Below are positions 7,701-40,258 of a stretch of DNA of 64,000 nucleotides, one piece after another (the first letter of the stretch is position 1; every line of letters begins with the position of its first letter). The notes below the pieces were generated by a model. That model saw only the letters and a program-made list of their open reading frames with translations. It made no database searches and was not told the DNA's origin. The DNA comes from Chrysemys picta bellii (lineage: Eukaryota), in assembly GCF_011386835.1 (NCBI RefSeq), contig NC_088795.1:91140001-91204000 (forward strand), in the 5' to 3' direction. The position numbers were made by a program, and so were the translations under genes.

Positions 7701-10700
7701 CATTTTTTTCTCCAAAACAACATGGGACTAGTCATGAAGCTATATTCCATACACTAGATGTCAGGAGGGCATTACTCTTTTATCTAGAGAGAGGACCAAA
7801 CCATTTAGAAGATCTCCTAGACTGTTTGTATCCACTGCAGACAGAAACAAGGGTTTGGTCATTTCAAAATAGAGGTTATCAAAGTAGATCTCTGTATATA
7901 TTAAAATCTGTTACAACTGAACTCATGTTCAACCCCTTTGAGAGCAATAGCACGTTCCACAGGAGCACCAAGTACTTCTGTAGCCTTACTTAAGGATGTA
8001 CTGGTTGCAGTGGCAACTTGGTACTCTGTTCATGGTTTCTAATCATCATGCCTTGGTGTCTGCAGCTAGATCAGATGCTGCTGTAGGCAATGCAGTTCTC
8101 TTCTGTATTGGACTCTGCTCCAAATCTCCTGCCTCCTTAGGGGGGATATTGCTTGGGAGTCTCCTGAAGTGGAGCACCCATAGGAACACTGCTTGAAGGA
8201 GGAGAGGTTACTCACCTTGTTCAGTGACTGCGGTTCTTCAAGGTGGTATGTCTCTATGGGTGCACCACTGCCCACCCTCCTTCCCCTCTGCTTCTGTGGG
8301 ACTTCGTAGTGTTGAAGGAACTGAGGGTGGTTCACCCACACAACCCCGTATAGCCTTGGTACGGACATGAGGATCTGTGGGACACATGCGTGGGCTGAAT
8401 GGGCAATGCTACCAAAAAAATTTTGATCAAAGGTTCAGGATGCAGGCACACCTGATGTGGAGCACCCACAGGGGGACACATTTCAAAGTTCTCCAGTTAC
8501 TGCACAAGGTAAGTAACCTCTCCAACAGTGTCAAAAATCTGTGCAATCAAGAGGTGATCACTTCTTGCAAAATGGTATTTTGTTCCTCAGAAGTTGCTTT
8601 TGCTGAATCTATAATGTTTTTGTATGTTTGTTTTCTCATCCCTGACCTCTTTAATTACTTTACATTAAAACAATGGGCTTTGCAAAGATGTCATGTCTTG
8701 CATTATTAAAATGTTTCTGAAATCTTTTTTTCTTTTTCAGTCTGATCTTGTGGATCAGAGTATATTTAATTTTATCCCAGAGGGGGAACATTCAGAGGTT
8801 TATAAAATACTGTCTACTCATCTGCTGGAAAGTGATTCATTGACCCAAGAATATTTAAAATGTAAGTTGTATTGCTAAAAAATCTGGTAGATGTGGGAAT
8901 CTTATCATAGAGTCTTTATATGGGCAACTCAGTTTCAGTGGAAGTAAATGCTTATGGGATTTCAGGGTGAAACGTATAGGTCTTAAAGGAAAAAGATGAG
9001 TCATTTTATTCTCTGAAGTAAATCAATATTTTATTTTAAAATTTCCCAATGACCAGAATAACATTGCATGTCATAAACATTTCCAAAACACAGGGAAAGT
9101 ATTTCTGTTTATAATTTATTGTCACATAATCATAGCAGCTGGAGAGAATAAAGACCTATTATGTCATACACCATTGGAATCATACTTCCAGGCACTTCCC
9201 ATTAGGCAGCTGTCCATGGAAACTTCCCTAGTAGGAGTTCCGCTCTTCTGTAGCTTCTCTGCAAAGCTGAAGTATGGAGAGTGAGTGCTGCTGAGCCTTT
9301 CCAAACACAAATCCCATAGTTTCCTCTCCACTATGTTGGGTAATTCCATGTTGGGGAAAAAATAAATGCCATAAGCCATTTTTCTCCATTGCAGCATGTA
9401 TATTAAATTTTTTATTAAATATGTTGTTTGTGGTAGTGTTGTTGCCATGTTGGTCCCAGGATATGAGAGAGACAAAGTAGGTGAAGTATTATCTTTTATT
9501 AGACCAACTTCTATCAATGGAAAGTTCAAGCTTTTGAGCTATACCAACCTCTTCTTCTGGTCTAGGAAAGGAAATCAGAGTGTCTGAGCTAAATACAAGT
9601 TGAGGACAGATTGCTAAGCATAAGGGAAAAGGGGTAAGGCATGTTGTAGGAAGCCACTTGAAAGGAAATCTGCAACTGAGGATTATATTGTTATGCATAG
9701 GGGGTTTGAAGAAGGTGATTAGGGATAGTATGCGGTGGGGTGTGTTACAAATTATTGTAATGAGTCCTAAAACTAGTGTCCCTATTGCATCTATAGTTTT
9801 TAGTGTCTAGCAGATTTATGAATGTAAGTTCCCAGGTTCAGTTTTGAAGGTGCTATGCAGGTTTCCTTTGAGGATGAGTTTTGAAAGATCAGATAGGGAG
9901 CGATTGCTTTGTGAAAAGTTTCTGTCCACAGGTGATATGGTATTTTTATCTTTTATAATTTTTCTGTGTGAGTTCATTTAAAACCATAGTGATATCTGGT
10001 TTCACCCACAAAGTTATTATTGAGGCATTTGATGCACTGGATGAGGTACACCACATGTTGTGATAAGCATGTTTAGGACCCATGAATTTTGAAAGGTATA
10101 TTGTGCGGGGTGTTGATCATTGTAGAAGTGATGATATGTCTGCAGGTTTTGCATCTGTTGTTCTCGCAGTCTGGTGCCAGTTTGAGTTGGTGAGTTCTGG
10201 TTTGTAGGGAGCTTGCTTCAGATGATTAGCTTGGTGAGATTGAGGGATTGTTTGAAGATCAGAAGAGGAGTTCAGGAAAAATTTATTTCAGGATATGGTC
10301 CCCATCAACTATAGGTGTAATTGTTTGATGGTACCCCTTATTGGTTCCCGGGGGAGGGGGGGTGGTAGGTGAGAGCTAGGGGTGTGCGGTCAGTGGGGTG
10401 TGTTTTTGTTTGTTTGTTTTTTTGCTGTATTGGAGCAGGTTCTCTGGGGGATTTGGATGGCCCTTTCCATGATGCAATCTACTTCTCTGATGGAGTGTTC
10501 TTGTTTAGTAAAGGCAGTTTTATGTGTATTTAGGTGAATATTCTGGACTTCCTCTTCAGAGCAAGTTCTGTGGTATCTGAGTGGCTGGCAGTAGATAACA
10601 GATTTTTTGGTGAGTCTGGGGTTGTTTCTAGATCTTTGGAGATCAATATGGTGATCCCTGGGTTTCTTGTGGATAACTGTTTGTAGGATTCCATCGTTGA

Positions 10701-13700
10701 ATCTTTCAGAGTAGCATCCAAAGAAGTGGGCTGTAGTCCACGAAAGCTTATGCTCCAATAAATTTGTTAGTCTCTAAGGGTATGTCTACACTACGAAATT
10801 TATCGAATTTATAGAAGCCGGTTTTATTGAAATCGGTTGTATACAGCCGATTGTGTGTGTCCACACATAAAATGCTCTAGGTGCTCTAGTCGGCGGACCG
10901 CGTCCACAGTACGAGGCTAGCGTCGATTTCCGGAGCATTGCACTATGGGTAGCTATCCGACAGCTATCCCACAGTTCCCGCAGTCTCCGCCGCCCCTTGG
11001 AATTCTGGGTTGAGATCCCAATGCCCGGATGATGCAAAACAGTGTCGCGGGCGGTTCTGGGTACATGTCGTCAGGCCCCTCCCTCCCCCGTCACAGCAAC
11101 GGCAGACAATAGATTCGCGCCTTTTTACCTGGGTTACCTGTGCAGACAACAGGGAGCCCGCTCAGCTCAGCTGAGCTCACCGTCACCATATGTCCTCTGG
11201 GTGCCGGCAGACGTGGGACTGCATTGCTACACAGCAGCAGCTGCTAACTGCCTTTTGGCGGTAGACGGTGCAGTAGACTGGTAGCCTTCATCGGCGATCT
11301 GGGTGCTGGCAGCCGTGGGGCTTGCCTTTTGGCAGTAGATGGTGTATTACGACTGTTAACCGTCCTATTACAAGTCGGGTCATCGCACATTAGCAGAGTC
11401 TTCCCCGAGCAGCCGATCGTGCAATAGGCCTGAAGACCATCGTCATACACTAACTGCCAAGCGCCCCGTATTTGCTGCCAAGCACCCAGAAAGATGCCGA
11501 GGGCTATCAGTCACGCTGCACCGTCGTCTTAAGATGTAAAAAATAGATTTGCTCTGTATTCATTTGCTTCCCCCTCCCTCCGTCAAATCAACGGCCTGCT
11601 AAACCCAGGGTTTTCAGTTTAATCTTTGGGGGGGGACCATTCTGTGTGACAGTTGTTTGTGTTTCTCCCTGATGCACAGCCACCGTTCTTGATTTTAATT
11701 CTCTGTGCCTGTACGCCATGTCGTCACTCGGCCCGCCCTCCCTCCTTCCCCTAGTCCGTCAGATACTACTTTCGCGCCTTTTCTTTGAATTCTGGGTTGA
11801 GATCCCAATGCCCGGATGATGCAAAACAGTGTCGCGGGCGGTTCTGGGTACATGTCGTCAGGCCCCTCCCCCCTCGTCACAGCAACGGCAGACAATAGAT
11901 TCGCGCCTTTTTACCTGGGTTACCTGTGCAGACAACATACCACGGCAAGCATGGAGCCCGCTCAGCTCAGCTGAGCTCACCGTCACCATATGTCCTCTGG
12001 GTGCCGGCAGACGTGGGACTGCATTGCTACACAGCAGCAGCTGCTAACTGCCTTTTGGCGGTAGACGGTGTAGCATGAGTGATAGCTGTGGGGCTGGCAG
12101 CCGTAGGGCTGCATTGCACCAGCCCCTTGCCCTTTGGTAGGCGATGGTATATTATGACTGGTACCCATCGTCGTCATACTGGAGTGGCTGTCAATCATGG
12201 CCACCTGGGCAGACATGTTTCGATGATGATGGCTACCAATCGTAATATACTATTTTCTGCCAATTGCCCAGTATTGTCTGCTAAGCACCCAGAAGAGGCC
12301 GAGGGCGATGCTGGGTGCTGGCGGACGTGGGGCTGTCAGACGTGGGGCTGCATTGCTACACAGCAGCAGCCCCTTGCCTTTTGGCAGACGATGGTATATT
12401 ATGATTGGTATCCATCATCATCGTACTGGAGAGGCTATCACTCATGCTGCACCGTCGGCTGCCAGCTTAAGATGTAAAAAATAGATTTGTTCTGTATTCA
12501 TTTGCTTCCCCTTCCTCCGTGAAATCAATGGCCTGCTAAGCCCAGGGTTTTCAGTTTAATCTTTGGGGGGACCATTCTGTGTGACAGTTGTTTGTGTTTC
12601 TCCCTGTTCCTGTACCTGTACGCCATGTCGTCACTCGGCCCTCCCTCCCTCCCGCCCTCCCTCCTTCTCCTGGTCCATCAGATACTACTTTCACGCCTTT
12701 TTTCTGACCAGGCGCCATAGCTAGCACTGGGATCATGGAGCCCGCTCAGATCACCGCAGCAATTATGAGCACTATGAACACCACGCGCATTGTCCTGGAG
12801 TATATGCAGAGCCAGGACATGCCAAGGCGAAACCCGGACCAGCCGAGGAGGCAATTGCAGCGCGGCGACGAGAGTGATGAGGAAATTGACATGGACATAG
12901 ACCTCTCACAAGGCACAGGCCCCAGCAATGTGGAAATCATGGTGTCACTGGGGCAGGTTCATGCCGTGGAACGCCGATTCTGGGCCCGGGAAACAAGCAC
13001 AGACTGGTGGGACCGCATCGTGCTGCAGGTATGGGACGATTCCCAGTGGCTGCGAAACTTTCGCATGCGTAAGGGCACTTCCATGGAATTTTGTGACTTG
13101 CTTTCCCCTGCCCTGAAACGCCAGGATACCAAGATGAGAGCAGCCCTCACAGTTGAGAAGCGAGTGGCGATAGCCCTGTGGAAGCTTGCAACGCCAGACA
13201 GCTACCGGTCAGTCGGGAATCAATTTGGAGTGGGCAAATCTACGGTGGGGGCTGCTGTGATCCAATTTGCCAGGGCAATGAAAGACCTGGTGATAGCAAG
13301 GGTAGTGACTCTGGGCAACGTGCAGTCAATAGTGGATGGTTTTGCTGAAATGGGATTCCCAAACTGTGGCGGGGCCATAGACGGAACCCATATCCCTATC
13401 TTGTCACCGGAGCACCAAGCCACCGACTACGTAAACCGCAAGGGGTACTTTTCAATGCTGCTGCAAGCCCTGGTGGATCACAAGGGATGTTTCACCAACA
13501 TCAACGTGGGATGGCCGGGAAAGGTAAATGATGCTCGCGTCTTCAGGAACTCTGCTCTGTTTCGAAAGCTGGAGGAAGGGACTTTCTTCCCGGACCAGAA
13601 AGTGACCGTTGAGGATGTTGAAATGCCTATCGTGATCCTTGGGGACCCAGCCTACCCCTTAATACCATGGCTCATGAAGCCGTACACAGGCAGCCTGGAC

Positions 13701-16700
13701 AGGAGTCAGGACCTGTTCAACTACAGGCTGAGCAAGTGCCGAATGGTGGTGGAATGTGCATTTGGACGTTTAAAAGCACGCTGGCGCAGCTTACTGACTC
13801 GCTCAGACCTCAGCGAAAAGAATATCCCCATTGTTATTGCTGCTTGCTGTGCGCTCCACAATATCTGTGAGAGTAAGGGGGAGACCTTTATGGCGGGGTG
13901 GGAGGTTGAGGCAACTCGCCTGGCCGCTGATTACGCGCAGCCAGACACCAGGGCGGTTAGAGGAGCACAGCAGGGCGCGGTGCGCATCAGAGAAGCTTTG
14001 AAAACGAGTTTTGTGACTGGCCAGGCTACTGTGTGAAACTTCTGTTTGTTTCTCCTTGATGAACCCTCCAAACCCCCCCCCCCCCCGACCCGGTTCACTC
14101 TACTTCCCTGTAAACCAACCACCCCACCCCACCCTCCCCTCCCCAATTCGAGCACCGCTTGCAGAGGCAATAAAGTCATTGTTTTTTCACATTCATGCAT
14201 TCTTTATTAGTTCCTCACAGAAGTAGGGGGATAATTGCCAAGGTAGCCTGGGATGGGTGGGGGAGGAGGGATGGAAAAGGACACACTGCATTTTAAAACT
14301 TTAACTCTTATTGAAGGCCAGCCTTCTGATGCTTGGGCGATCATCTGGGGTGGAGTGACTGGGTGGACGGAGGCCCCCCCACCGTGTTCTTGGGCGTCTT
14401 GGTGAGGAGGCTATGGAACTTGGGGAGGAGGGCTGTTGGTTACACAGGGGCTGTAACGGCGGTCTCTGCTCCTGCTGCCTTTCCTGCAGCTCAACCATAC
14501 ACTCGAGCATATCAGTTTGATGCTCCAGCAGACGGAGCATTGACTCTTGCCGTCTGTCTGCAAGCTGACGCCACCTATCGTCTTCAGCCCGCCACTTGCT
14601 CTTTTCATCCCGCCATTCAGCCCGCCACCTCTCCTCTCGTTCATATTGGGCTTTTCTCATCTCCGACATTGACTGCCTCCACGCATTCTGCTGTGCTCTA
14701 TCAGCGTGGGAGGACATCTGCAGCTCCGTGAACATATCGTCCCTCGTCCTACGTTTTCTCTTTCTAATGTTCACGAGCCTCTGCGAAGGAGAAACATTTG
14801 CAGCTGATGGAGGAGAAGGGAGAGGTGGTTAAAAAAGACACATTTTAGAGAACAATGGGTACACTCTTTCATTACAAGGTCGCATATTTCGGCTTGCAGG
14901 CAGCCATGGTAGGCCACAGTGTTTTGGCTTTTTTAACCTTTTTAACATGCGGGAAAGGTTGCAAACAGCAGCGCATTTCACATATCAAGGATGAATTGGG
15001 TTGTCCATTTAAAATGGGTTTTCAATGTAAAAGGAGGGGCTGCAGTTTCCCGGTTAACATGCGGCACAAACACAAGTAAACCACCCCCCCCACACACACA
15101 CACGATTCTCTGGGATGATCACTTCACCCCTCCCCTCCACCGCGTGGTTAACAGCGGGGAACATTTCTGTTCAGAAGAGCAGGAACGGGCGCCTCTGAAT
15201 GTCCCCTTAATAAAATCACCCCATTTCAACCAGGAGAGCTTTCTGGAGATGTCCCTGGAGGATTTCCGCTCCATCCCCATACACGTTAACAGACTTTTCC
15301 AGTAGATATACTGGCCGCGATTGCCAGGGCAAATTAATCATTAAACACGCTTGCTTTTTTTTTGTAATGTTTACAAATATTTACAAAGTTACACTCACCA
15401 GAGGTCTCCTGTGTGCCCTGAGGGTCTTGGGTGAGTTCGGGGGTTACTGGTTCCAGGTCCAGGGTCACAAACATATCCTGGCTGTTGGGGAAACCGGTTT
15501 CTCCGCTTCCTTGCTGCTGTGAGCTACCTACAGTACCTCCATCGTCATCTTCCTCGTTCCCCGAACCGTCTTCCCTGTGTGTTTCTCCAGTGAGAGAGTC
15601 ATAGCACACGGTTGGGGTAGTGGTGGCTGCACCCCCTAGGATCGCATGCAGCTCCGCGTAGTAGCGGCAAGTTTGCGGCTCTGCAAATATCGTCCCTCGT
15701 CCTACGTTTTCTCTTTCTAATGTTCACGAGCCTCTGCGAAGGAGAAACATTTGCAGCTGGTGGAGGAGAAGGGAGAGGTGGTTAAAAAAGACACATTTTA
15801 GAGAACAATGGGTACACTCTTTCATTACAAGGTCGCATATTTCGGCTTGCAGGCAGCCATGGTAGGCCACAGTGTTTTGGCTTTTTTAACCTTTTTAACA
15901 TGCGGGAAAGGTTGCAAACAGCAGCGCATTTCACATATCAAGGATGAATTGGGTTGTCCATTTAAAATGGGTTTTCAATGTAAAAGGAGGGGCTGCAGTT
16001 TCCCGGTTAACATGCGGCACAAACACAAGTAAACCACCCCCCCCACACACACACACGATTCTCTGGGATGATCACTTCACCCCTCCCCTCCACCGCGTGG
16101 TTAACAGCGGGGAACATTTCTATTCAGAAGAGCAGGAACGGGCGCCTCTGAATGTCCCCTTAATAAAATCACCCCATTTCAACCAGGAGAGCTTTCTGGA
16201 GATGTCCCTGGAGGATTTCCGCTCCATCCCCATACACGTTAACAGACTTTTCCAGTAGATATACTGGCCGCGATTGCCAGGGCAAATTAATCATTAAACA
16301 CGCTTGCTTTTTTTTTGTAATGTTTACAAATATTTACAAAGTTACACTCACCAGAGGTCTCCTGTGTGCCCTGAGGGTCTTGGGTGAGTTCGGGGGTTAC
16401 TGGTTCCAGGTCCAGGGTCACAAACATATCCTGGCTGTTGGGGAAACCGGTTTCTCCGCTTCCTTGCTGCTGTGAGCTACCTACAGTACCTCCATCGTCA
16501 TCTTCCTCATTCCCCGAACCGTCTTCCCTGTGTGTTTCTCCAGTGAGAGAGTCATAGCACACGGTTGGGGTAGTGGTGGCTGCACCCCCTAGGATCGCAT
16601 GCAGCTCCGCGTAGTAGCGGCAAGTTTGCGGCTCTGCCCCGGACCTTCCGTTTGCTTCTCTGGCTTTGTGGTAAGCTTGCCGTAGCTCCTTAATTTTCAC

Positions 16701-19700
16701 GCGGCACTGCTGTGTGTCCCTGTTATGGCCTCGGTCCTTCATGGCCTTGGAGATCTTTTCTAATACTTTTCCATTTCTTTTACTGCCACGGAGTTCAGCT
16801 ATCACTGCTTCATCTCCCCATATGGCGAGCAGATCTCGTACCTCCCGTTCGGTCCATGCTGGAGCTCTTTTGCGATCCTGGTACTCCATCACGGTTACCT
16901 GTGCTGATGAGCTCTGCGTGGTCACCTGTGCTCTCCACGCTGAGCAAACAGGAAATGAAATTCAAACATTCGCGGGTCTTTTCCTGTCTACCTGGTCAGT
17001 GCATCTGAGTTGAGAGTGCTGTCCAGAGCGGTCACAATGAAGCACTGTGGGATAGCTCCCGGAGGCCAATAACGTCGAATTCCGTCCACACTACCCCAAT
17101 TCCGACCCGCAAAGGCCGGTTTTATCGCTAATTCCCTCGTCGGAGGTGGTGTAAAGAAACCGGTTTAAAGGACCCTTTAAGTCGAAAGAAAGGGCTTCGT
17201 TGTGTGGACATGTCCAGGCTTAATTCGGTTTAACGCTGCTAAAGTCGACCTAAACCCGTAGTGTAGACCAGGCCTAAGGTGCCACAAGTACTCCTGTTCT
17301 TATTGTTGAATCTGATCATGCTGTCCAGGAAGTTGATGCTGGTGTGGAAGCGTTTTAGAGATAGTTTGATCAATGGATGGTTCTGGTTGAAGTTGTGGTG
17401 AAAATCTATGAGGGAGTTGGATCTTCTGTCCAGAGTATGAAAATATCAATATATCTGTATCTCAGGTATATTGTTGGTTTTGTGGTGCATTTTTCCAGAT
17501 ATTCTTCCTCAAATGGGTCCATGAAAAGGTTGGTATATTGGGGAGCCATGCTAGTACCCATGACTGTTCCCACAGTTTGGACAAAGTGTTTGTTGTTAAA
17601 TGGGAAGTTGGCCTCATTGACGTAGTCATCACGTTTAAGGACTACAGCAACTCCCCCTTTGCTGGTTTGATCACTATCTGGTAGTTGGATTTTAGGGGCA
17701 GCATATCTGTCCTTTTGGTGATAGGAAGACTGTGGTGATGTAATGTTTGTGGAGGATTTCATTGTATCTTTTCATGAAGCAATTGATGTAATGATCCAGT
17801 GTTGGTTTCATCCACGGGGAGGGCCGGGGGGAGGGTGAGGGTGTCCAGTCAGATTCTTTTTTCTTATGACTGTCAGTGGGATTGTGGTAGTTGTGGGTGG
17901 CAGTGTTTTAATTGTGAAAGAATTCCTTGAGGAGGTGCATGGGTCTTACACATGCCTATCACGTGTGGTGTATTCATTCAGTGCATCAAAGCCCCAATAA
18001 CAGAGTGAAACAGACAATCCTGCTCTCAAATGAACTCACACAGAAAAAAAGATAAAAACACCCTGTCACCTATGGGCAGACCCTTTTCACAAAGCAGTTA
18101 CTCGGTATCTGATCTCTTAATACTTGTCCTCAAAGAAAACCGGCACAGTTCAAAAGTGAGCCTGGGAACTAAAATTCATAAGCCTGTTAGACATTAAAAT
18201 CCTGGACTCAGCCGGGACACTGGTTTTTTGGCTTATTACAACAATTTGTAATGCTCCCACATCACACCCCTTATGCATCATAATTTAACCCTCAATTGCA
18301 CAATTCTTTTTCAAGTGACTTCTTTCAACGTGCTTGCCCCTTATGCTTAACAATCTATCCCAACTTGTATCTAGTTCAGAGACTCTGATTTCCTTCCCCA
18401 GACCTGAAGAAGCGCTCTGTGTATCTCAAAAGCTTGTACCTTCTACAACAGAGGTTGATCCAATAAAAGATATTACTTCACCTATCTTGTCTCTTTTATG
18501 AAATATATATGCTAATTATTATTGCTTTTATATTAATCTCTATTGGTGCATGTTTCATCATGTAAGCCGCCTTTTCATTATATTGTTTCAGCAAAAAATC
18601 AATTAGAATTCTGTTGCCATATGCTGCGAGGAACAATAGACCCGAAAGAACCACCTACATATGAATATGTAAAGTTTATAGGAAATTTCAAGTCTTTGAA
18701 TAATGGTAAGAAATGCTTCACTGTAATGTGGCCAAAATTAAAGGCACTTTCCGAAGATTTATACATTAGGAAAGGTTTGTGAAAACTTAGTGATAATATT
18801 TAAAATATTTTGGTATTTATTTTGAAAGATACTAGACTATGATACAGGTTGTGTTGTTTATACTTAGCATTACTGAAAAAATAATACTTATTTATATATG
18901 GTATTATATTGTAAACAGTAATGTCTGAGCAGGTGAAAGTAAAATAAAAATAGTACCTTGCAGCTCTATAACACCTTCCATTAAAGAGTGTTAATGTTTG
19001 TAAAACACTTTAATAAACATTTTACACAAGAGGAGACGTGAGGTAAGGAAAAAAATAGGCCAGTGTTTTTAAGTGCCTAAATCCATATCTAGGTACATTA
19101 CTAATTAACGTGATTTTTTAGAGTTACTGAATACCTGCAGCTGTCATTGGCTTCCAGTGGGTTCAGAATTAGAACCTACGTCTCCACCTTACACTCAGTC
19201 CTGTGCTTTAATCAACAATTATCCTTCATAGAACACTCAGAACAAAACCACAGCAGCTGTTGTTTTTTTAAATATGGTATCAGAAGGGCAGGGGAATTTA
19301 TCTCTTAACTGCATGGTTTTTCCTGCAGAGTATGAGATAAATTGAGCTCTCAAAGGATAAATGTGTGGCTGAGGCTGCCTAAATTGTTATACGTTTTGTA
19401 AGCAAATAGAATGTTATAAATATTCTGCATTTGGAAGACAGTACAGGAGATAGAAAAGTCCTAAATGCTGTAGAACTTACCAGTTTTGACATGAAAATTA
19501 ACATAAAATATTCCATTAGGATATATTGTGTAACCCAGGTTATATTGGATTGGTATTATGTAGGAAAAAGATTTCAAGCAATGACGTTCTATAGGAGTGA
19601 CTTATTTGTTCTCTACTGGCTGTCTATACTTGATCATGTAGGAGGATTAGTGGGCCCCTGCGTTGTTCCATCAATAAACTGGGTGATGTTATCTTGAGCT

Positions 19701-22700
19701 GAGCAAAGTCTAGAAAAGAAAGCCTTACCTAAGGATTCAAGAGAAAAAGGTTACTGTAATACTTTTCTCTCATGACTTCATTGGGGCTAAAAATGACAAA
19801 ACCTGATGAAAAATTCAGAAATTTAAAACCATTTGTTAACAAGTAGTCTAAAATAATCTAATTAAAATAGGTATTAAGAAGCAATGCTATAGCTTTTATT
19901 GGTTTCCTAAAACCATCTGTTGTCCATGACTGTATTTAAGTAGCTGGACTCTAATTTTAGTTGTTAGAGAAGTCCCTTGCTGGTTTTGATAACATGGATA
20001 TGACTAGTACTATTAAATTATATGCCACATGTTTGTATTTTTAAATGTAGCTTTGCTCATAATTCATAGTAAATTTATAGTATCTTACAATAAGTTAATG
20101 TTGGGGGTTTTGCCAACTTTGTGCCGTCATGCACATTTTGTAACTAAGGCTATGTCTACACTACCACTTACATTGGTATTACTTATGTCACTCAGGGGTG
20201 TGAATAAGCCACCAGTGACCTAAGTGCCGGTGTGGACAGCACTATGTCTGTGGGAGAGTTTCTCCTGCCAACATAGTTACTGCTGCTCATTGGGGGTGGA
20301 TTAATTAAGTCTACGGGAGAGCTCTCTCCCATTGGCCTAGAGCAGCAACGCTTGAGAGCTTACAATGGCGCAGCTGCATCGATGTAGCTGTGCTGCTTTA
20401 TGGTCTCTAGTATAGCCATAGCTTAACTCTTCTCCCTCTCCATCTTTCCCCCACCCCATCTCCTTCAGTCCCCAACTCAGCGCACAACGGTTATGAAGGA
20501 ACTATCCAGCGGCCCCATCGGCCTTCATATGAAGACAGAGTTTGCTTTGTAGCTACAGTTAGGTTAGCTACACCTCAGTTTATCAAGGTACGTTTGGGAT
20601 TTTCCTCTGCACAAGTGAAAACAAGTGTTTACGACACTTGGTAAACACTTAAGTGTGCTTAGGTCATGAAACTTTCAATGTGACTATACCACTTTAAGTA
20701 CTGCTACAAACTTTTGATCCAAAACAATGCAGACATCTGGTCTGCACTGCTTTCACCTAGGAGTGTCCTCCACATTGCTGACAACATCAGAGAAGTTTTT
20801 TGTAGTTCATTACAGTTTGAAATAACCTCAAAAGCCATTGATTTCAGTGCATATTCCAGTATCATTAATATTGGGTTTGATTTTGATCTCACACCAGCAT
20901 TACTCATTGAAGTCAGTTGAGTTATGCCAGTTTAGAGCTAGTGCAGTTGAGATCAGATTTTGGCTCAGTCTGCTTTAAATACATAAAACAATGAAAGTGC
21001 CTAAAAAATAACTTTTAAAGCTACGTTCTTGTGGATTTATCAGCCTACTTTGAGTAAGTCTGAATTTCATAAGAGCTTCTAAATTAGAATAGAGCAGATT
21101 TGAGAGACTTGTTTGTTTGTTTTTTAGGAAATGTGCACTGTTGAAGAACCCAATGAAGAGTTCACATCTAGACATAGCTTAGAATGGAAGTTCCTATTCT
21201 TGGATCACAGGTGCCATTCCTTATAATAAAGTAGTACATAGTAGCATTCTGGCTGTAATCTTTAGAATACGCTAATCAGCACTGACTATTCATAAACTGA
21301 GTTGGGATTTGTGTGGGTTTTTATTATTATTTTGGAGAACATGTTGTAAACATGAACTAGAATGAGACTGATTTTATTGTTTTTATATGTAAAAATAAAG
21401 TAACATTAACTTCTATATTAATTAGGGCACCTCCAATAATAGGCTATTTACCATTCGAAGTTCTGGGGACATCGGGCTATGATTACTATCATGTAGATGA
21501 CCTAGAAAATCTGGCAAAATGTCACGAACACTGTAAGTAAATGTCAAAACTCGGTGCTACAAAAACCATCCTCAATGAAACATCTGTACGTTATGTGAAA
21601 GTCTTCTTAATTATACTGAATTGTGTGGAGAAGGCAGGATACTTACTGAAATCCTGCATCACTCAAGTGATATTTTCTGTGGCAAGACCACAGTTTCCTG
21701 CTACAAAATGTTTATGGTTCATTTATATACAGGCACCGGAGACGTGGTCTCATACCACAGCCTTCTATTATAAAGAAATTACAAAATCATGGCTGCTGTA
21801 GCTGAAAAAATTTGTAATATAACTTATTGAAAAGCCTTCTTTTCCATTGTTTGTAGTACTTGAAATAGAAGTTCCTCTTTTTCTTATCTTGTTTTTAGTC
21901 ATTATCCTAGTGTCAGTCAGATTCAGGTGAAGATCTCTTAGTTTAGATTTAGTGAATAATATAAATAATTGAATTACTACTGCGTCACAGAATTCACATA
22001 ACATGTGAAAGCAAAGAAGTCTTATTCTTTTTTATCTTCTAGTAATGCAATACGGGAAAGGGAAGTCATGTTATTACAGGTTCCTGACAAAGGGGCAGCA
22101 GTGGATTTGGCTACAAACACATTACTATATTACTTATCATCAGTGGAATTCCAGGCCAGAGTTTATTGTCTGTACACACACTGTAGTAAGGTAACAGTTG
22201 TTTTTTTATTAATTTTAGAGAAGCTCTCTTAATTGGCAACTGTATTGCTGATTTTTTAAAACATTGGAAAGATTTAACTAATAGTAGTTTGCAAAGACAT
22301 TGTGAAGCCTCTTGAGTGTTTATACCCTTTATTCCATGAGCAAAACAGCATGTCTGAGGAGGTCACATTTCAAGACATTATTGTAAAAAACATTTAGATG
22401 AGATATAATAAATGTGGTTTGTTCTTTTATAGTTATGCAGAAGTTCGAGCAGAAAGAAGGCGAGAACTTGGTATTGAAGAGTCTCTTCCAGAGATAGCAG
22501 CAAATAAAGTGAGCTTCCTAACTTTTTTTTATTATATGGTGTCCCTTTGTACTGCTGTATATTTGATTTTTTTAATCAAAGGTAGGAAAGTTTTTATCCT
22601 CTGCTGCTACAGCTAATGCGATGCTTTTTAACTATGAAATATTATCCCATGACTAAGAAGATGTAGGAAAGGTGACTGCTTCACAACGTACGACCTTGGA

Positions 22701-28700: not shown

Positions 28701-31700
28701 GCGGAATGAACACTGGGCATATTAGTACTCAGCACATGATACAGCAACAGCCTTTGCAGAGTACAGCAACACAGGTAAAGTTTGTCATAAGTACCTATGC
28801 TAGGTAGTATAATCACACGGTACCAAAATTGAAACCCATTATGGGCCTGCCTGATCCTGCAGTGATTCTATATAGAGAATTTCCATTGAAGTCAATGTAA
28901 ATTTGAATGTGCAAGAAACACAGGTTCATGCCCTAAATGTTTAGGGTTGAAATAGATTTTGTTTTCTCTTTCAGGAAAAGGCTTAGATTTTATAGTCTTC
29001 TCTTGATAGAAGAATTATCAAGTGTAAATGATGAGCAGTGAATAACAAGTAGTTCTTGTGGAAGGACCCAGCTGTGACGGGTTGGATCACAGAAACCCCC
29101 TTGGGAGCTGCCTCCCAATGTGCCAAGACTACTTCTACCCCTGCTTACCCTGCCAACTCGGGACCCCAGCACCGTCTTGCTGAGCCAGACACTCCCATCT
29201 ACTCCAACACAGACCCAGGGTCTGAATTACTTGCCCCACTGCCAATGGGGTCTAAACCCAAATAAATCCATTTTACCCTGTATAAAGCTTATACAGGGTA
29301 ATCTCATAAATTGTTCACCCTCTATAACACTGATAGAGAGATATGCACAGTTGTTTGCTCCCCCAGGTATTAATACATACTGAGTTAATTAATAAGTAAA
29401 GTGATTTTATTAAATACAGAAAGTAGGATTGAAGTGGTTCCAAGTAGTAACAGACAGAACAAAGTAAGTCACCAAGCAAAATAAAATAAAATGCGCAATT
29501 CTGTGTCTAATCAAACTGAATACAGATAAGATCCTCACCAGTTCCAGAATGCTCCCTTTTACAGACTAATCTCCTTTTGCCTGGGTCCAGCAATCACTCA
29601 CATCCCTTGCAGTCACTGCCCTTTGTTCCAGTTTCTTCCAAGTATCCTGGGGAGAAGGGGGGGGGAGAGGAGAATATCCCTAGTTCTTTATTCCTACCAC
29701 CCTCGAAAGCCTTTTGTCATGGTGACCTATGTTGCCTTCAGTCCCAATAAAGTGCCTTCATAGAGCTCACTAAAGCTGATTGGACGTGCTCTCTGTCTTC
29801 CCCTCACCCCAATACTTCCAGGGACTGAGCATGCTTACACCTGCAGTTCTGCCTGGCCCATCATTCCACCTTCTTGTGCAGTTCTTCTAATTTTATAAGA
29901 GTTTTGGAAGAGGAGCATGGGACTGGGAGTGAGAAACTCCTGGATCCTAATCCTGGCACTAACACTTACTCACTGCATGGTCTGGGACAAATAATTTAAC
30001 CTTTGTTTGCTCATCTGTAAAAACTGGGATAATATATATTTACATAACTCACAAAGATGTTGTAGGACTGGATTAATTATTTTGTACCGTGTTTTGAGAG
30101 TATAAATCATATATAAGAACATTTAGTATTAGCAATAATTAACTATTAGTGTACAGCATTGTTATTTATGCCCGCAAAGCAAGCTGTGCCTTCTCTGTGT
30201 TTGAAAGGGGAGTTTATTTTTACAGCTGCATTCAATTAATTTATTACATATTTTTCTTTCTTAGCATACTCAGCAAAATATACTTAGTGGGCACAATCAA
30301 CAGACTTCTCTTACCAGTCAGTCACAGAATACACTTTCAGCCCCCTTATATAACACTATGGTGATTTCCCAGCCAACGACAGGAAATGTGGTCCAGATTC
30401 CATCTAGTTTACCACAAAACAACAACCAGAGTGCTGCAGTAACTACTTTCACCCAGGACAGACAGATCAGGTAAATATAAAGGAGCAATATTCATTCAGA
30501 TGATTTTGCTAGAGCTTTCTGTGCTTTAGTAGTCACCAGATCTTATGGAAAAGGAGACAAAAGTTAAACCAAAAATTTCATGCAGTTTTACTTAGTGTAG
30601 GCATGTGCACGTGTTGTAGTCTGAGGACCAAACTTGTGAAGAGATACTCCTGTAATTCCATTAAAACTCATGGTGTTGAGGCACTGGTGGAGGGGTGGGC
30701 CTTTGAGGGCAATATGTAGCCCATTGTACTTGAATTTGTTTAGTTTGTATTAAGCAAAGGAAAAATTGGTTTGTCTTGAATGGCCCAGTCAGTGATAAAC
30801 TGGCACTTACCTAATCAGATTGATATAGGAAAGTTCATCCAGTGTATCTGAAGCAGAATTTTTTTTTCCAAACTAAGCTGATAGGACCTTCTGATGTCTT
30901 TTTTCCTTTGACAGATTTTCTCAAGGTCAGCAGCTTGTCACAAAATTAGTCACCGCCCCTGTAGCATGTGGAGCGGTAATGGTCCCAAGCACTATGTTTA
31001 TGGGGCAGGTGGTGACTGCCTACCCCACTTTTGCTGCACAACAGCAGCAGCCACAGACATTATCAATAACGCAGCAGCAGCAGCAGAGTCAGCAAGAGCA
31101 GCAACAGCAGCTCAGTACGGTTCAGCAATCGGCTCAAGCTCAGCTGACGCAGCACCCGCAGCAGTTCTTACAGGTAATGCAGCGCTGTCTCGAAATCTGT
31201 CAGATTGCACAAACTTTCAGATAGTGACGTAAACCAGTTCAGTATATACTGCAAATTTGATGACTGAGAATGTTATTTAAATAAGCAACCTTGTTAATCT
31301 CAGACAAGCGATGTGCATGGGAGGAGGTTCTTTCATCAACCTTATTTAAAGTCTCTTGCAATCTTTATTGTCAAGTTCACAAATAAGAACTGCACTTAAA
31401 TAAATCTGTTTCCCAGCCTATGGGCATTAGAGTACACTAGGAGTGGGACATGAAGAGAAACAATGGGGACAGGAATAATTGTCACACTGGGTCCACCTCA
31501 TCTCACCATAAACATGCATGCGTGCGTCTAAGTAAAGGGGCAGGCATCTCTTTGTAAACCTCTCACTTTCCCTCCAGTTGCCATGGTGGCCCACAATGCA
31601 ACAAGGTGTGAGCTGACTCAGGAGGCAGCATGCCAGCCTAAGGCCTGGTCTATACTACCCGCCTGAATCGGCGGGTAGAAATCGACCTCTCGGGAATCGA

Positions 31701-33035
31701 TTTATCGCGTCCCGTGGAGACGTGACAATCGATCCCCGAATCGGCGCTCTAACTCCACCAGCGGAGGTGGTAGTAAGCGCCGCCGACAAAAAGCGGCAGA
31801 AGTCGATTTTGCCGCCGTCTTCACAACGGGGTAATTCGGCTGTAATACGTCGAATTCAGCTACGCTATTCACGTTGCTGAATTTGCGTATCTTAAACCGA
31901 CTCCCCGCTGTAGTGTAGATGTACCCTAAGTGTCTTTTCTCTGCTTCTGTGTAGCTGCAGGAGCACATGCTGCCTGGACCTCAGGGAGATCCCAGTGGAT
32001 GTCTGAGCAGCAATAGCCGTCCCATGAGTAAGGAGAGAAGAAGCCACCATGCGGGAGAGGAGAGATTGGATCAGAAAGAAAAGAGAGGGTGCAGGGAAGG
32101 AGGAACAGATTGAGAATAACAAAAGAGCAAAAAAGAAAATACGTACTAAAAATAAGAAATCAAAAAAAGACTGAAGAGGGGGAAAGAGGAGGTAGAATGG
32201 ACTAGTGAAAGGAGAGGCAGCAGTGACCTTGCAAAACTAGTGTACTGGAATGTGTCTCACAGGAAGGCCTAGGGAAGGGGGCATGTCAGTTGCCAGCCCA
32301 TTAGAGGGGCAATCTGCTACAACAAAAACTTTGGGAACCACTGAAGTAGAGACACAGTCAACCTATTTGGACCTGAAATTTTGCCTTCTTTTAAAGGAAG
32401 ATAATCCCTTACAGCATCCCTAACTAGTTTTTGTATATATGTGTGGGCATTCTGTTAAAAGAATGTTAAAATTGCAAATCAGATTCTTGAAATGTCGAAG
32501 TTCAAGTTGGCTGCTCAACCTTAACTATACTCAGATCATTAGGGGTCTGTGCTCTTATAAAGCCTTTAATTACAATTGCTGTGTCTCTCTGCCTCTAACT
32601 ATTGCCATAGTTCTCCTAGCCATTGACATCACAAACAGAGATCCAATAAGTTGCTTTACAGTTAGTCAGATGCTGAAAATATTAATACTCTGTAATTAGC
32701 TATTTTGTTCTGAATGAATCTTCACTTTGTGCAATCGTAAGTGAAAGTAGTCATGGTCCTATTGATGTTTAACCTCATGTGAGAGTTTTAAAATATAACC
32801 AGACCTGCATTTTCATAGTGTGGGCAATAATCCTCTTTTATTTATTTCTTCTTAGACATCCAGGCTACTTCATGGAAATCAATCAACTCAGCTTATTCTC
32901 TCTGCTGCTTTCCCACTACAACAAAGCACTTTTACTCAATCACACCACCAGCAGCATCAATCTCAGCAGCAGCAGCAACTCTCACGACATAGAACTGACA
33001 ACATGATTGATCCTTCCAAAGTTCAGCCACAGTAG
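1658..33035 (+). CDS. CLOCK: CLOCK (bHLH-PAS circadian transcription factor), 16 spliced coding exons from PAS-A to the stop; 5' exons lie upstream of the window
   Basis: Exons 1658-1747, 8741-8861, 18592-18705, 20469-20587, 21128-21210, 21426-21532, 22043-22190, 22433-22508, 23471-23612, 24065-24165, 26418-26507, 27815-27973, 28568-28774, 30265-30470, 30915-31173, 32856-33035. All have AG/GT boundaries with matching phases and translate to recognisable CLOCK ending in ...DPSKVQPQ*. Confidence 0.98.
2667..2757 (+). mobile_element. PLE terminal fragment (family 1) with decayed hammerhead motif
   Basis: aagaagagctctgtgaagcttgaaagcttgt...acagaagttggtcc...tcacctacctggtctc matches copies at 3846, 9464, 18395 and 44615. 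Confidence 0.7.
3812..4255 (-). mobile_element. PLE 3' fragment (family 1) with inverted 5' end, inserted in the DIRS
   Basis: Terminal repeat with mutated hammerhead (3901-3945, GAAA->AAAA); imperfect inverted duplication, about 4107-4168 vs 4180-4241. Confidence 0.7.
4552..4711 (-). mobile_element. Short PLE-derived insertion (family 2) with 12-bp TSD and 34-bp inverted repeat
   Basis: TSD AGAACTATTTAA at 4540-4551 and 4712-4723; perfect inverted repeat 4551-4584 / 4641-4674. Confidence 0.85.
4599..4639 (-). ncRNA. Minimal type I hammerhead ribozyme motif (PLE-type)
   Basis: - strand reads GCAU-CCGAAGA-A-GUGAG(GUUUUUA)CUCAC-GAAA-GC-UU-AUGC: 4-bp stem I, 5-bp stem II, palindromic AGCU stem III. 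Confidence 0.65.
8741..8861 (+). CDS. CLOCK: CLOCK exon ([40 protein letters not shown])
   Basis: tttcag|TCT...AAA T|gtaagt, 121 nt. Confidence 0.97.
9432..10704 (-). mobile_element. Penelope-like element, 3' part (RT C-terminus, GIY-YIG endonuclease, terminal repeat), decayed
   Basis: - strand remnants [19 protein letters not shown] and HVVYLIQC...FVGET; family-1 terminus at 9464-9570. Confidence 0.8.
10705..10777 (+). mobile_element. Family-2 PLE-derived short insertion, left half (right half at 17275-17301), split by the Harbinger
   Basis: Reads tctcTAA|Harbinger|TAAggtgccacaagtactcc; own TSD AT(C/T)GTTGAATCT at 10693-10704 / 17302-17313; hammerhead at 10714-10753 with G5->A. Confidence 0.85.
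11000..12702 (+). repeat. Diverged tandem duplication in the Harbinger 5' region (about 11000-11782 and 11787-12702)
   Basis: gaattctgggttgagatcccaatgcccggatgatgc at 11000 and 11787; both units end agatactactttc(g/a)cgcctttt; several indels. Confidence 0.9.
12735..14036 (+). CDS. Harbinger (HARBI1-like) DDE transposase, 433 aa, uninterrupted
   Basis: Motifs GAIDGTH (D 13380-82), ILGDPAYPL (D 13644-46), [16 protein letters not shown] (E 13752-54); AATAAA at 14169-14174. Confidence 0.93.
   Translation: MEPAQITAAIMSTMNTTRIVLEYMQSQDMPRRNPDQPRRQLQRGDESDEEIDMDIDLSQGTGPSNVEIMVSLGQVHAVERRFWARETSTDWWDRIVLQVWDDSQWLRNFRMRKGTSMEFCDLLSPALKRQDTKMRAALTVEKRVAIALWKLATPDSYRSVGNQFGVGKSTVGAAVIQFARAMKDLVIARVVTLGNVQSIVDGFAEMGFPNCGGAIDGTHIPILSPEHQATDYVNRKGYFSMLLQALVDHKGCFTNINVGWPGKVNDARVFRNSALFRKLEEGTFFPDQKVTVEDVEMPIVILGDPAYPLIPWLMKPYTGSLDRSQDLFNYRLSKCRMVVECAFGRLKARWRSLLTRSDLSEKNIPIVIAACCALHNICESKGETFMAGWEVEATRLAADYAQPDTRAVRGAQQGAVRIREALKTSFVTGQATV
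14301..16889 (-). CDS. Harbinger Myb/SANT-like DNA-binding partner; exons 16352-16889 and 14301-14803 (346 aa if spliced directly)
   Basis: [20 protein letters not shown]...[10 protein letters not shown] trihelix motif. Phase-1 donor TCT G|gtgagt joins in frame to acceptor catcag|CT GCA...[14 protein letters not shown], followed by a coiled-coil-like C-terminus. Confidence 0.85.
14734..16637. repeat. Near-identical 953-bp tandem duplication inside the Harbinger Myb gene
   Basis: 14734-15684 vs 15687-16637, period 953 at both ends; 3 substitutions seen by eye. Confidence 0.95.
17302..18495. mobile_element. Penelope-like element continuation: RT on - (17302 to about 17810) and inverted GIY-YIG/terminal piece on + (about 17880-18495)
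   Basis: [17 protein letters not shown]...[13 protein letters not shown] on -; family-1 terminus ccagacctgaagaag...ccaataaaagatattacttcacc on +. Confidence 0.75.
18592..18705 (+). CDS. CLOCK: CLOCK exon ([38 protein letters not shown])
   Basis: tttcag|CA AAA...AAT G|gtaaga, 114 nt. Confidence 0.97.
20148..20423. mobile_element. Harbinger MITE
   Basis: TAA TSD at 20145-47 / 20424-26; termini ggctatgtctacacta ... tagtatagccatagct. Confidence 0.8.
20469..20587 (+). CDS. CLOCK: CLOCK exon ([40 protein letters not shown])
   Basis: cttcag|TC CCC...AAG|gtacgt, 119 nt. Confidence 0.96.
21128..21210 (+). CDS. CLOCK: CLOCK exon (PAS-B: [28 protein letters not shown])
   Basis: ttttag|GAA...CAC AG|gtgcca, 83 nt. 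Confidence 0.97.
21426..21532 (+). CDS. CLOCK: CLOCK exon (PAS-B: [35 protein letters not shown])
   Basis: aattag|G GCA...CAC T|gtaagt, 107 nt. Confidence 0.97.
22043..22190 (+). CDS. CLOCK: CLOCK exon (PAS-B/PAC: [49 protein letters not shown])
   Basis: ttctag|TA ATG...GTA AG|gtaaca, 148 nt. Confidence 0.97.
22433..22508 (+). CDS. CLOCK: CLOCK exon ([26 protein letters not shown])
   Basis: ttatag|T TAT...AAA|gtgagc, 76 nt. Confidence 0.97.
23471..23612 (+). CDS. CLOCK: CLOCK exon ([47 protein letters not shown])
   Basis: cttcag|AAT...TCA T|gtaagt, 142 nt. Confidence 0.96.
24065..24165 (+). CDS. CLOCK: CLOCK exon ([34 protein letters not shown])
   Basis: cattag|CA ACG...CAG|gtaact, 101 nt. 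Confidence 0.93.
24412..25291. mobile_element. Non-autonomous hAT-like element
   Basis: TIRs tagggtcctaccaaattca / tgaatttgttagggcccta; 8-bp TSD catatag(t/g). Confidence 0.75.
26418..26507 (+). CDS. CLOCK: CLOCK exon ([30 protein letters not shown])
   Basis: tcttag|TCC...CAG|gtatgg, 90 nt. Confidence 0.93.
27137..27665. mobile_element. Non-autonomous hAT-like element
   Basis: TIRs cagtgctccccaaact / agtttgggcaccactg; imperfect 8-bp TSD gcctacag/acctagag; internal GC-rich short repeats. Confidence 0.65.
27815..27973 (+). CDS. CLOCK: CLOCK coiled-coil exon (orthologue of mouse exon 19): [53 protein letters not shown]
   Basis: ctgcag|CCT...CAG|gtgagt, 159 nt; an alternative in-frame acceptor lies 12 nt downstream. 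Confidence 0.93.
28568..28774 (+). CDS. CLOCK: CLOCK exon ([17 protein letters not shown]...[11 protein letters not shown])
   Basis: ttaaag|ATG...CAG|gtaaag, 207 nt. Confidence 0.95.
29073..29660 (+). mobile_element. Probable LTR fragment (solo or truncated)
   Basis: Abrupt start TGTGACGGG... with a compositional shift; no matching TSD or right TG..CA end found. Confidence 0.45.
29900..30090 (+). mobile_element. Old MIR/CORE-type SINE remnant
   Basis: ctcatctgtaaaaactgggataata core-like segment preceded by a tRNA-like head. Confidence 0.5.
30265..30470 (+). CDS. CLOCK: CLOCK exon ([13 protein letters not shown]...TTFTQDRQI)
   Basis: tcttag|CAT...ATC AG|gtaaat, 206 nt. Confidence 0.93.
30915..31173 (+). 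CDS. CLOCK: CLOCK Q-rich exon ([28 protein letters not shown]...QQFLQ)
   Basis: tgacag|A TTT...CAG|gtaatg, 259 nt. Confidence 0.96.
31642..31926. mobile_element. Harbinger MITE (285 bp) with termini like the full-length element
   Basis: TAA TSD at 31639-41 / 31927-29; GGCCTGGTCTATACTAC ... GTAGTGTAGATGTACCC; CpG-rich. Confidence 0.9.
32856..33035 (+). CDS. CLOCK: CLOCK last coding exon ([23 protein letters not shown]...DPSKVQPQ*)
   Basis: tcttag|ACA...CAG TAG, 180 nt. Confidence 0.97.
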
Positions 33036-39963: not shown

Positions 39964-40258
39964 GGGTATGTCTACACTTACCATGGATTGACGCTGTGGC
40001 GATCGATCAACCGGGGGTTGATTTAGTGGGTCTAATGAAGACCCACTAAATCGACCAAAGATCACTCTCCCGTTAACTCCAGTACTCCACTGGAACGAGA
40101 AGCCTAAGGTAAGTCGATGGGAGAGTTTCTCCTGTCGACCCAGCGCAGTGTAGACCCCACAATAAGTCGACCTAAGCTACATCGACTCCAGCTACGTTAT
40201 TTACATAGCTGGAGTTGTGTAATTTAGGTTGACTTAACCCCATAGTGTAGACCTGCCC
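39964..40258. mobile_element. Harbinger MITE
   Basis: tta|GGGTATGTCTACACT ... AGTGTAGACCTGCCC|ttt (TSD one mismatch). Confidence 0.75.

Follow-up and report, generated by a model that had tools for sequence, protein, structure and literature searches.

The locus raises the question of whether a two-gene Harbinger transposon, which occupies 6497 bp (positions 10778-17274) of the 64,000-nucleotide stretch of painted turtle DNA that was analysed (the window), is able to move by itself. The initial annotation regarded it as potentially autonomous. In our opinion it is quite probable that the element is a young NuwaII-type copy that has decayed neutrally, is probably non-autonomous and, with its ends intact, could be mobilised in trans. 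Because of a private duplication in its Myb gene and the neutral decay of its transposase, the copy in the CLOCK intron is probably not self-sufficient. Since the ends are intact, the earlier suggestion that it may still be mobilisable is plausible provided that the proteins are supplied, but not on the strength of its own partner gene, which is disrupted.

The features of PHIS membership, i.e., a DDE_Tnp_4 transposase with D-D-E, a second gene of the Myb/SANT/trihelix type, terminal inverted repeats (TIRs) and a 3-bp target-site duplication (TSD) of the form TWA, were all present, and their positions are listed in Table 1. Both termini and the TAA duplications were found as first annotated; the inverted ends are imperfect over 17 nt (13 of the 17 positions agree), share the core GTCTACACTAC and both begin with GG. 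Each unit of the 5' tandem region holds one copy of the transposase start, ATGGAGCCCGCTCAG. Minus the duplication, the element would measure 5544 bp. The two genes are convergent, as had been proposed, and the many surviving CpGs were reflected in an observed to expected ratio of 0.64 within the element vs 0.28 elsewhere in the window.

Table 1. Positions in the window of the Harbinger element, its parts and its surroundings
Feature	Position	Strand	Remarks
Upstream CLOCK PAS-A exon (presumed)	8741..8860	+	approximate bounds; suggested by a motif
Left TSD	10775..10777	.	TAA, C before
5' TIR	10778..10794	+	GGGTATGTCTACACTAC
Inner inverted repeat, left arm	10956..10975		pairs with 17044-17063; 20 nt, 90% complementary
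5' tandem region	10996..12734	+	about 2.2 diverged units of 790-940 bp, 79-89% identical
Transposase ORF	12735..14036	+	433 aa, DDE_Tnp_4; open, D216/D266/E340 present
Candidate internal splice donor	13026..13034	+	CAG/GTATGG after codon 98; suggested by P0138, P0140
Convergent intergenic spacer	14037..14300		AATAAA at 14169 (+) and 14203-14208 (minus strand)
Myb-like exon 2	14301..14803	-	166 codons and stop, entered in phase 1; 14803 to 14304 = 500 nt
Tandem duplication, copy 1	14729..15681	.	953 bp; breakpoint within 14729-14734, microhomology
Remnant of extra, putatively BEN-like exon	15234..15305	+	in Myb intron; 23 codons and stop; 225 bp missing
Chimeric exon	15399..15756	-	358 nt, made of the first 75 nt of exon 2 and the last 283 nt of exon 1; lies between the two exons
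Tandem duplication, copy 2	15682..16634	.	99% identical to copy 1
Second remnant of extra exon	16187-16258		within duplication copy 2
Myb-like exon 1	16352..16889	-	16889 to 16352; 538 nt, 179 codons and 1 nt; donor G/GTGAGT
Inner inverted repeat, right arm	17044..17063		pairs with 10956-10975
3' TIR	17258..17274	-	reverse complement GGCCTGGTCTACACTAC
Right TSD	17275..17277	.	TAA, G after
Downstream CLOCK exon	18579..18704	+	approximate bounds; PDB 6qpj/4f3l CLOCK, E=6.4e-21
Nearby MITEs	~20151-20416; 31644-31924; 39966-40258; 45372 onward		

The host gene is CLOCK, as first annotated, with plus-strand exons on either side that match CLOCK chains in the PDB (E=1.7e-31 and 6.4e-21). The element sits in an intron of this gene and is nested in a Penelope-like repeat. 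When the flanks were rejoined with a single TAA, exact matches were found at 56904, 58891 and 58933 in the rest of the window, for which the chance expectation was 0; these are paralogous empty sites. The 6.5-kb insertion triples the length of the CLOCK PAS-A intron, and the element lies in the sense orientation.

GCA_011386835.2 holds six full-length sister copies (L001-L006) at 97.7-98.3% identity, all with separate 3-bp duplications. The target is flanked by C before and G after in all seven copies. Three sister duplications are TAA, one is TTA and two are TTG; thus, five of the seven fit TNA and the two TTG are off pattern. The 5' TIR is the same in L001, L002 and L006 and has a C at position 6 in L003-L005, while L002 carries one additional 5' tandem unit. 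Han et al. (2015; PMC4482050) described NuwaII elements as having the target C/TNA/G, ends that start with GG, TIRs of 13-46 nt and two ORFs, and counted 15 NuwaII families with two ORFs in Chrysemys picta bellii (Table S7). With C/G flanks in 7/7 copies, GG ends, a 17-nt TIR and two ORFs, the element is a NuwaII-type PIF/Harbinger of a kind already catalogued for the painted turtle, any match to a named Repbase or NuwaII family being judged from features and not from a sequence alignment. By its listed features, NuwaII-15_CPB from the same species (Repbase Harbinger-2D_CPB; PMC4482050, Table S7) resembles it in a TIR of about 17-18 nt, a 433-aa DDE_Tnp_4 transposase and a Myb_DNA-bind_4 protein of about 350 aa, and the likeness to NuwaII extends to the target C/T../G in all seven copies, the GG ends and the hundreds of copies. 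However, NuwaII-15_CPB is listed at 5036 bp, compared to 6497 bp here (5544 bp minus the duplication), its Myb protein has 353 aa rather than 346 aa, and the TTG duplications of two sister copies depart from TNA. Intact copies had been called uncommon in amniote genomes, an opinion that this genome contradicts: at least seven distinct 433-aa ORFs share one 90% protein cluster, two-gene sisters occur and 15 families have been published. The private divergence of the CLOCK-intron copy is at most 0.52% (28/5387 sites, 10 of the 28 being of the CpG-decay type), and this value, together with the perfect target duplication, supports the proposed recent insertion. Variants private to this copy include those at 13081, 13089, 13527, 13612, 14807 and 17210.

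The transposase agreed with its first description as an uninterrupted 433-aa protein with D, D and E: it covers positions 1-158 of the 158 of Pfam PF13359 (DDE_Tnp_4; E=1.9e-35), and D216, D266 and E340 fall within conserved motifs. Its score of 122.3 bits is 1.4-3.5 bits under those of the sister copies. Nine private substitutions were counted, seven replacements and two silent changes, against a neutral expectation of 77% non-synonymous sites, which is a neutral pattern. The catalytic triad is kept. Three private replacements, F116S, H265N and G293E, affect positions that are conserved in 54-55 of the 57 turtle homologues. H265N adjoins the catalytic D266, and N at 265 occurs in none of the 57 homologues. 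Singleton and shared transposase variants did not differ (Fisher p=1), and the comparison therefore failed to show selection inside the subfamily. Of the seven copies compared, the CLOCK-intron copy has one of the more decayed transposases; with an open ORF, an intact triad and a Pfam score close to those of its sisters, it may still work.

The spliced 346-aa Myb/SANT partner of the initial annotation was confirmed in part. Both exons, which were searched and translated one at a time, are open and together make 346 codons (538 + 500 nt), and exon 1 matches PF13837 (Myb_DNA-bind_4, E=4.5e-19) on the minus strand; however, a 953-bp tandem duplication inserts a frameshifting chimeric exon between them. 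The duplication is absent from all six sister copies and hence private to the CLOCK-intron copy. The sequence at its junction is new, with microhomology and an irregularity of one base, and its two copies differ at three internal sites (14807/15760, 15169/16122 and 15556/16509), at each of which one of the two has a derived change when compared with the sister elements. The chimeric exon is bounded by an acceptor and a donor identical to the authentic ones, and because of this identity its inclusion is the default expectation. If it is included, translation shifts the frame and reaches a stop after 51 codons, giving a 231-aa protein that is predicted to retain the Myb domain and to lose the C-terminal 143 residues, and the mRNA would be a likely target of nonsense-mediated decay. 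We infer such inclusion and the resulting loss of function; the 346-aa protein would arise only if the chimeric exon were skipped. Han et al. reserved the term "potentially active" for elements with both ORFs intact in one copy, while the Myb gene here has a frameshifting exon.

Splicing in the family is visible in RNA. The joint 14803/15399 was present in the RNA-type runs X15 and X19 and absent from the DNA runs X1 and X4, and the Myb intron of the family is thus spliced at exactly the predicted sites. The runs were examined as Logan contigs of 70-120 nt, and the family is very high-copy; among the pieces listed none bridges 15681/15682 or the right boundary of the element. The shares of words found in the runs (0.83 vs about 0.72) do not tell whether the element is present, since one and the same sample gives 0.83 in one run and 0.74 in another. 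A 461-nt contig from run X15 that ends at 17275 was considered as an empty site and rejected, as it ends there and runs past the right end of the stretch that was compared.

The Myb intron also holds remnants of an extra exon, the core of which was lost in the CLOCK-intron copy and in four of the six sister copies. The 104-aa plus-strand ORF at this place (14991-15305) gave neither a Pfam match nor, in itself, any relatives in the databases; relatives turned up solely for its longer form in L001/L002. The AlphaFold models of the extra-exon ORF were poor (pLDDT 37.5 and 46), and a language-model search gave BEN clusters (score 0.94), a lead that it may be BEN-like. Two predicted proteins from other turtles, P0138 and P0140, have the transposase N-terminus fused to the extra exon, and this joint would use the donor after transposase codon 98 (13028 to 15234).

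These observations can be arranged into a possible history. A 6.5-kb NuwaII-type copy would have been cut and pasted into the Penelope-like repeat in the CLOCK intron at most about 0.5% divergence ago; it would then have decayed neutrally, with the 953-bp tandem duplication arising within the Myb gene and making an extra exon that shifts the frame of the message, and with the transposase gaining seven amino-acid changes. The presumed role of the Myb protein is to attach to the ends and carry the transposase into the nucleus. Mobilisation in trans would fall to better-preserved sisters, if the family is still active. Full autonomy would instead require that the chimeric exon is often skipped and that the transposase withstands its seven changes, which we consider unlikely. 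The open 433-aa ORF with its triad, the intact ends and target duplication, the two open Myb exons with 346 codons in total, the barely lowered Pfam score and the high CpG content are what would be expected of an autonomous copy, but the chimeric exon shares a genuine acceptor and donor, the 7:2 ratio reveals no selection on this copy, and the asparagine beside D266 has no counterpart in the homologues. With a broken partner gene, a neutral ratio and changed conserved residues, the claim of autonomy was not supported.

An assembly error or a variant of one haplotype would give the true element an ordinary two-exon Myb gene, and the lack of a listed contig across the 15681/15682 junction fits this explanation; nevertheless, a junction of the kind seen in real repair or slippage, three differences each derived in one copy and the absence of N runs within the window make it very unlikely. 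That the element is a domesticated host gene pair such as HARBI1/NAIF1 can practically be dismissed. The homologous protein domains, the open transposase ORF and the spliced Myb-like transcripts of the family would suit such a pair, and several turtle copies are named "putative nuclease HARBI1" in NCBI and UniProt, but HARBI1 and NAIF1 are host genes present in single copy and lacking both ends and TSDs, whereas the turtle element has inverted ends and a TSD, occurs at unrelated loci in many near-identical copies with separate duplications, lies at an intronic site inside another repeat and has a neutral substitution pattern (seven replacements vs two silent changes). A bolder reading, which we also hold to be improbable, is that the family is still jumping in living painted turtles, with the CLOCK-intron copy segregating and moved in trans or via exon skipping, and with the transposase N-terminus and the BEN-like exon forming a third, regulatory protein.

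The neutrally decayed, probably non-autonomous copy can be placed among known systems. Harbinger transposition depends on both proteins, as the initial annotation had stated, according to PMC9392472, which cites Sinzelle 2008 and Hancock 2010. The same paper describes the reconstructed zebrafish Harbinger3_DR (Sinzelle et al. 2008), which likewise has two genes and a 3-bp AT-rich duplication and in which the Myb/SANT/trihelix partner binds the ends and imports the DDE transposase. The activity of Harbinger3_DR was shown experimentally, whereas the turtle family is known here from sequence, and the long 5' tandem repeats and the extra BEN-like exon of some copies set the turtle element apart. 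In the rice Ping/Pong and mPing system (Hancock et al. 2010, PMC2836001), a Myb-like ORF1 and the transposase are also both required, and related MITEs are mobilised in trans via shared ends; this plant family, however, is naturally active, while the turtle MITEs share only 10-15 terminal nt with the element. MITEs do occur near the insertion, but no subterminal similarity between them and the element was found, and the idea that it supplied them is weakly supported.

The CLOCK-intron copy is not the best candidate for a genetic tool, as it has a broken partner gene and one of the more decayed transposases among the seven, and copies that retain both genes are found elsewhere in the genome (L001, L003 and L004). 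Few cut-and-paste transposons are naturally active in amniotes; a turtle Harbinger that works would therefore be useful as a tool, and it would also be informative on the slow-evolving genomes of turtles.

Window 10778-17274 is a complete DNA transposon whose terminal inverted repeats are identical between the two ends at 13 of 17 positions. Its flanks are the two halves of a single Penelope-like repeat, and the 22-nt rejoined flank site (with one TAA) has three further exact matches in the window against a chance expectation of 0; because these paralogous empty sites exist, the target duplication is proven. The window has no N bases. The transposon occupies 6.5 kb of a ~9.7-kb CLOCK intron with a PAS-A exon on either side, its transposase gene has the same orientation as CLOCK, and two CLOCK exons matched solved CLOCK structures (E=1.7e-31 and 6.4e-21). 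The initial annotation, which had described both termini, a TAA duplication and a location inside CLOCK, was mostly right in its observation. The subterminal 200 bp (10778-10977 and 17075-17274) have a CpG o/e of ~1.2 at both ends, and in both the TIR-like motifs GTCCACA(C) and AAACCGG recur, to which the Myb-like protein may bind. The 5' region (window 10996-12734; compare L002:2961-6000 in a sister copy) is built from diverged tandem units, each 790-940 bp long and each with a decoy for the start codon and first five codons of the transposase; copies differ in the number of units, L002 having one extra.

Features of the element, of its CLOCK surroundings and of the extra exon in sister copy L001 (window positions unless a locus is named)
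Feature	Position	Strand	Description
Element 5' end	from 10778	+	begins GGGTATGTCTACACTAC
Element 3' end	to 17274	-	reverse complement of GGCCTGGTCTACACTAC
TAA target duplication	10775-10777 and 17275-17277		both sides of element
CLOCK exons, located with short motifs	~1673-1750, 8741-8860, 18579-18704, 21128 onward, 21361 onward, 22009-22191	+	
Transposase ORF	12735-14036	+	433 aa, spans whole DDE_Tnp_4 model, E=1.9e-35
Transposase F116S			F in 54/57 turtle homologues
Transposase H265N			adjoins catalytic D266; H in 55/57 turtle homologues, N in 0
Transposase G293E			G in 55/57 turtle homologues
Transposase M310I			M in 46/57 turtle homologues
Myb gene exon 1	16889->16352	-	179 codons + 1 nt, full Myb_DNA-bind_4 domain
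Myb gene exon 2	14803->14304	-	166 codons
Tandem duplication	14729-15681 / 15682-16634		953 bp, from within exon 2 across intron into exon 1
Chimeric exon	15756->15399	-	358 nt, created by duplication, genuine acceptor and donor at edges
Extra coding exon	L001:8500-8793	+	antisense within Myb intron
Window remnants of extra exon	15234-15305 and 16187-16258	+	

The family has been described before. Within the PIF/Harbinger-ISL2EU-Spy (PHIS) superfamily, Han et al. 2015 (PMC4482050) set up a NuwaII group, marked by the target C|TNA|G, ends that begin with GG and a pair of ORFs. For C. p. bellii, Table S7 of that paper gives 15 NuwaII families, matched to Repbase Harbinger-1 to -5_CPB, with 265-434 copies each, transposases of 411-535 aa and Myb_DNA-bind_4 proteins of 231-370 aa; in NuwaII-15_CPB (Harbinger-2D_CPB), the transposase has 433 aa and the TIR 18 nt. 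Our element fits every testable feature of the group, the named consensus being compared by its listed features only. The database relatives of the transposase numbered 1564 at E<=1e-10, and the 120 best matches listed all came from turtles. Its 90% protein cluster has 23 members, of which the 15 listed are all named painted turtle or diamondback terrapin and which include at least seven distinct 433-aa versions from C. p. bellii; the exact protein of the window has no entry in this collection.

Six full-length sister loci were retrieved (L001-L006, all from GCA_011386835.2), which differ from the element by 1.7-2.3%, within a range of 0.6-3.1% among all seven copies. Their own 3-bp duplications are TAA in three, TTA in one and TTG in two, with C before and G after in 6/6. 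The TTG duplications (L001:4038-4040 and 9817-9819; L006:4012-4014 and 9496-9498) fall outside both the TWA of PIF/Harbinger and the TNA of NuwaII, with the flanking C and G retained. Private substitutions of the element were found at 28 of 5387 aligned sites (0.52%), ten of them of the CpG-decay type. If turtles are taken to accumulate ~0.5-1 x 10^-9 substitutions per site and year, such divergence would put the insertion at no more than about 5-10 million years, and the 953-bp duplication at roughly one third of that age. Over its left two thirds the element is nearest to L001 (98-99.4%), and over the Myb exon-1 region (15278-16730) it is nearest to L003-L006 (98.8-99.6%) compared with only 98.0% for L001, a mosaic that points to recombination between subfamilies or to template switching between them.

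The spliced 346-aa Myb/SANT partner that had been proposed stood in part. Its two exons, which were handled one by one and not as a joined spliced model, sum to 346 aa, the annotated products of the sister copies have 346-347 aa, and the splice joint 14803|15399 (GT..AG, minus strand) occurs in two RNA-type runs and not in two DNA runs; the splice sites are genuine for the family. The part that failed concerns this copy, in which the chimeric exon, if included, shifts the frame and leads to a stop after 51 codons, so that the predicted product has 231 aa, keeps the Myb domain and lacks the C-terminal 143 residues. Since this stop lies ~200 nt upstream of the next exon junction and the usual rule for nonsense-mediated decay is 50-55 nt, the message with the chimeric exon would be a decay target. 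The microhomology at the duplication junction and the three sites at which its copies differ, each a derived change in one copy, argue that the event is genuine and not of the most recent origin; the duplication was found in 0/6 sister copies. The 264-bp spacer between the convergent genes has two poly(A) signals, one per strand.

The Myb intron of L001 and L002 has 225 bp extra, which on the + strand extends an ORF to 224 aa. The extra segment has protein relatives in other turtles (58-77% identity); in two predicted proteins it comes after the transposase N-terminus, with the joint at ...RIVLQ, and in one it terminates a RAB3C isoform. A matching donor, CAG|GTATGG, is present in the window at 13028|13029. 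The 225-bp core is absent from the window copy and L003-L006, i.e., the youngest copies sampled are without it; the missing stretch starts directly after the acceptor AG and ends at an AAG, and its two edges share AGG microhomology. A Pfam search of the ORF gave no match and its structure models were poor; a language-model search returned BEN-domain clusters (score 0.94), a lead that gives partial support to a BEN-like third coding piece.

Four short elements (MITEs) in the window share the end type of the transposon and have TAA/TTA-like duplications. Their similarity to it stops after 10-15 nt; cross-mobilisation is possible, with support from the termini only. In the MITE at ~31644-31924 (~281 bp, TAA duplication), the unlike ends match the left and right ends of the family at 15-16/17, and the CpG o/e of 1.55 is unusually high for the painted turtle genome. 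In the run data, which are short contigs throughout, the family has a very high word depth in the DNA runs, and joints at single-copy depth in two of these, X1 and X4 (window 11500-17499), mark internally deleted derivatives. The joints 13687->17258 and 14444->17253 are common to two differently labelled organisms, which implies old shared insertions or very close taxa.

According to PMC9392472, which cites Sinzelle 2008 and Hancock 2010, Harbinger transposition needs both proteins, the Myb-like one binding the ends and importing the transposase. The described 433-aa transposase with D, D and E was borne out, as D216, D266 and E340 are placed in conserved motifs. Its ORF has nine private changes, seven replacements and two silent, a ratio expected from neutral drift because ~77% of its sites are non-synonymous; private residues were compared against 57 turtle homologues. 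The Pfam domain score is just 1.4-3.5 bits lower than in the sister copies, and a loss of activity is for this reason no more than plausible. With the chimeric exon and these seven replacements in a neutral pattern, the autonomy proposed for the element is not supported. L001 and L003-L005 have one or two private transposase replacements per copy, and the Myb gene is also kept in L001, L003 and L004; better candidates for autonomy therefore exist among the sister copies, and the element in CLOCK is probably a non-autonomous family member that could be mobilised in trans.
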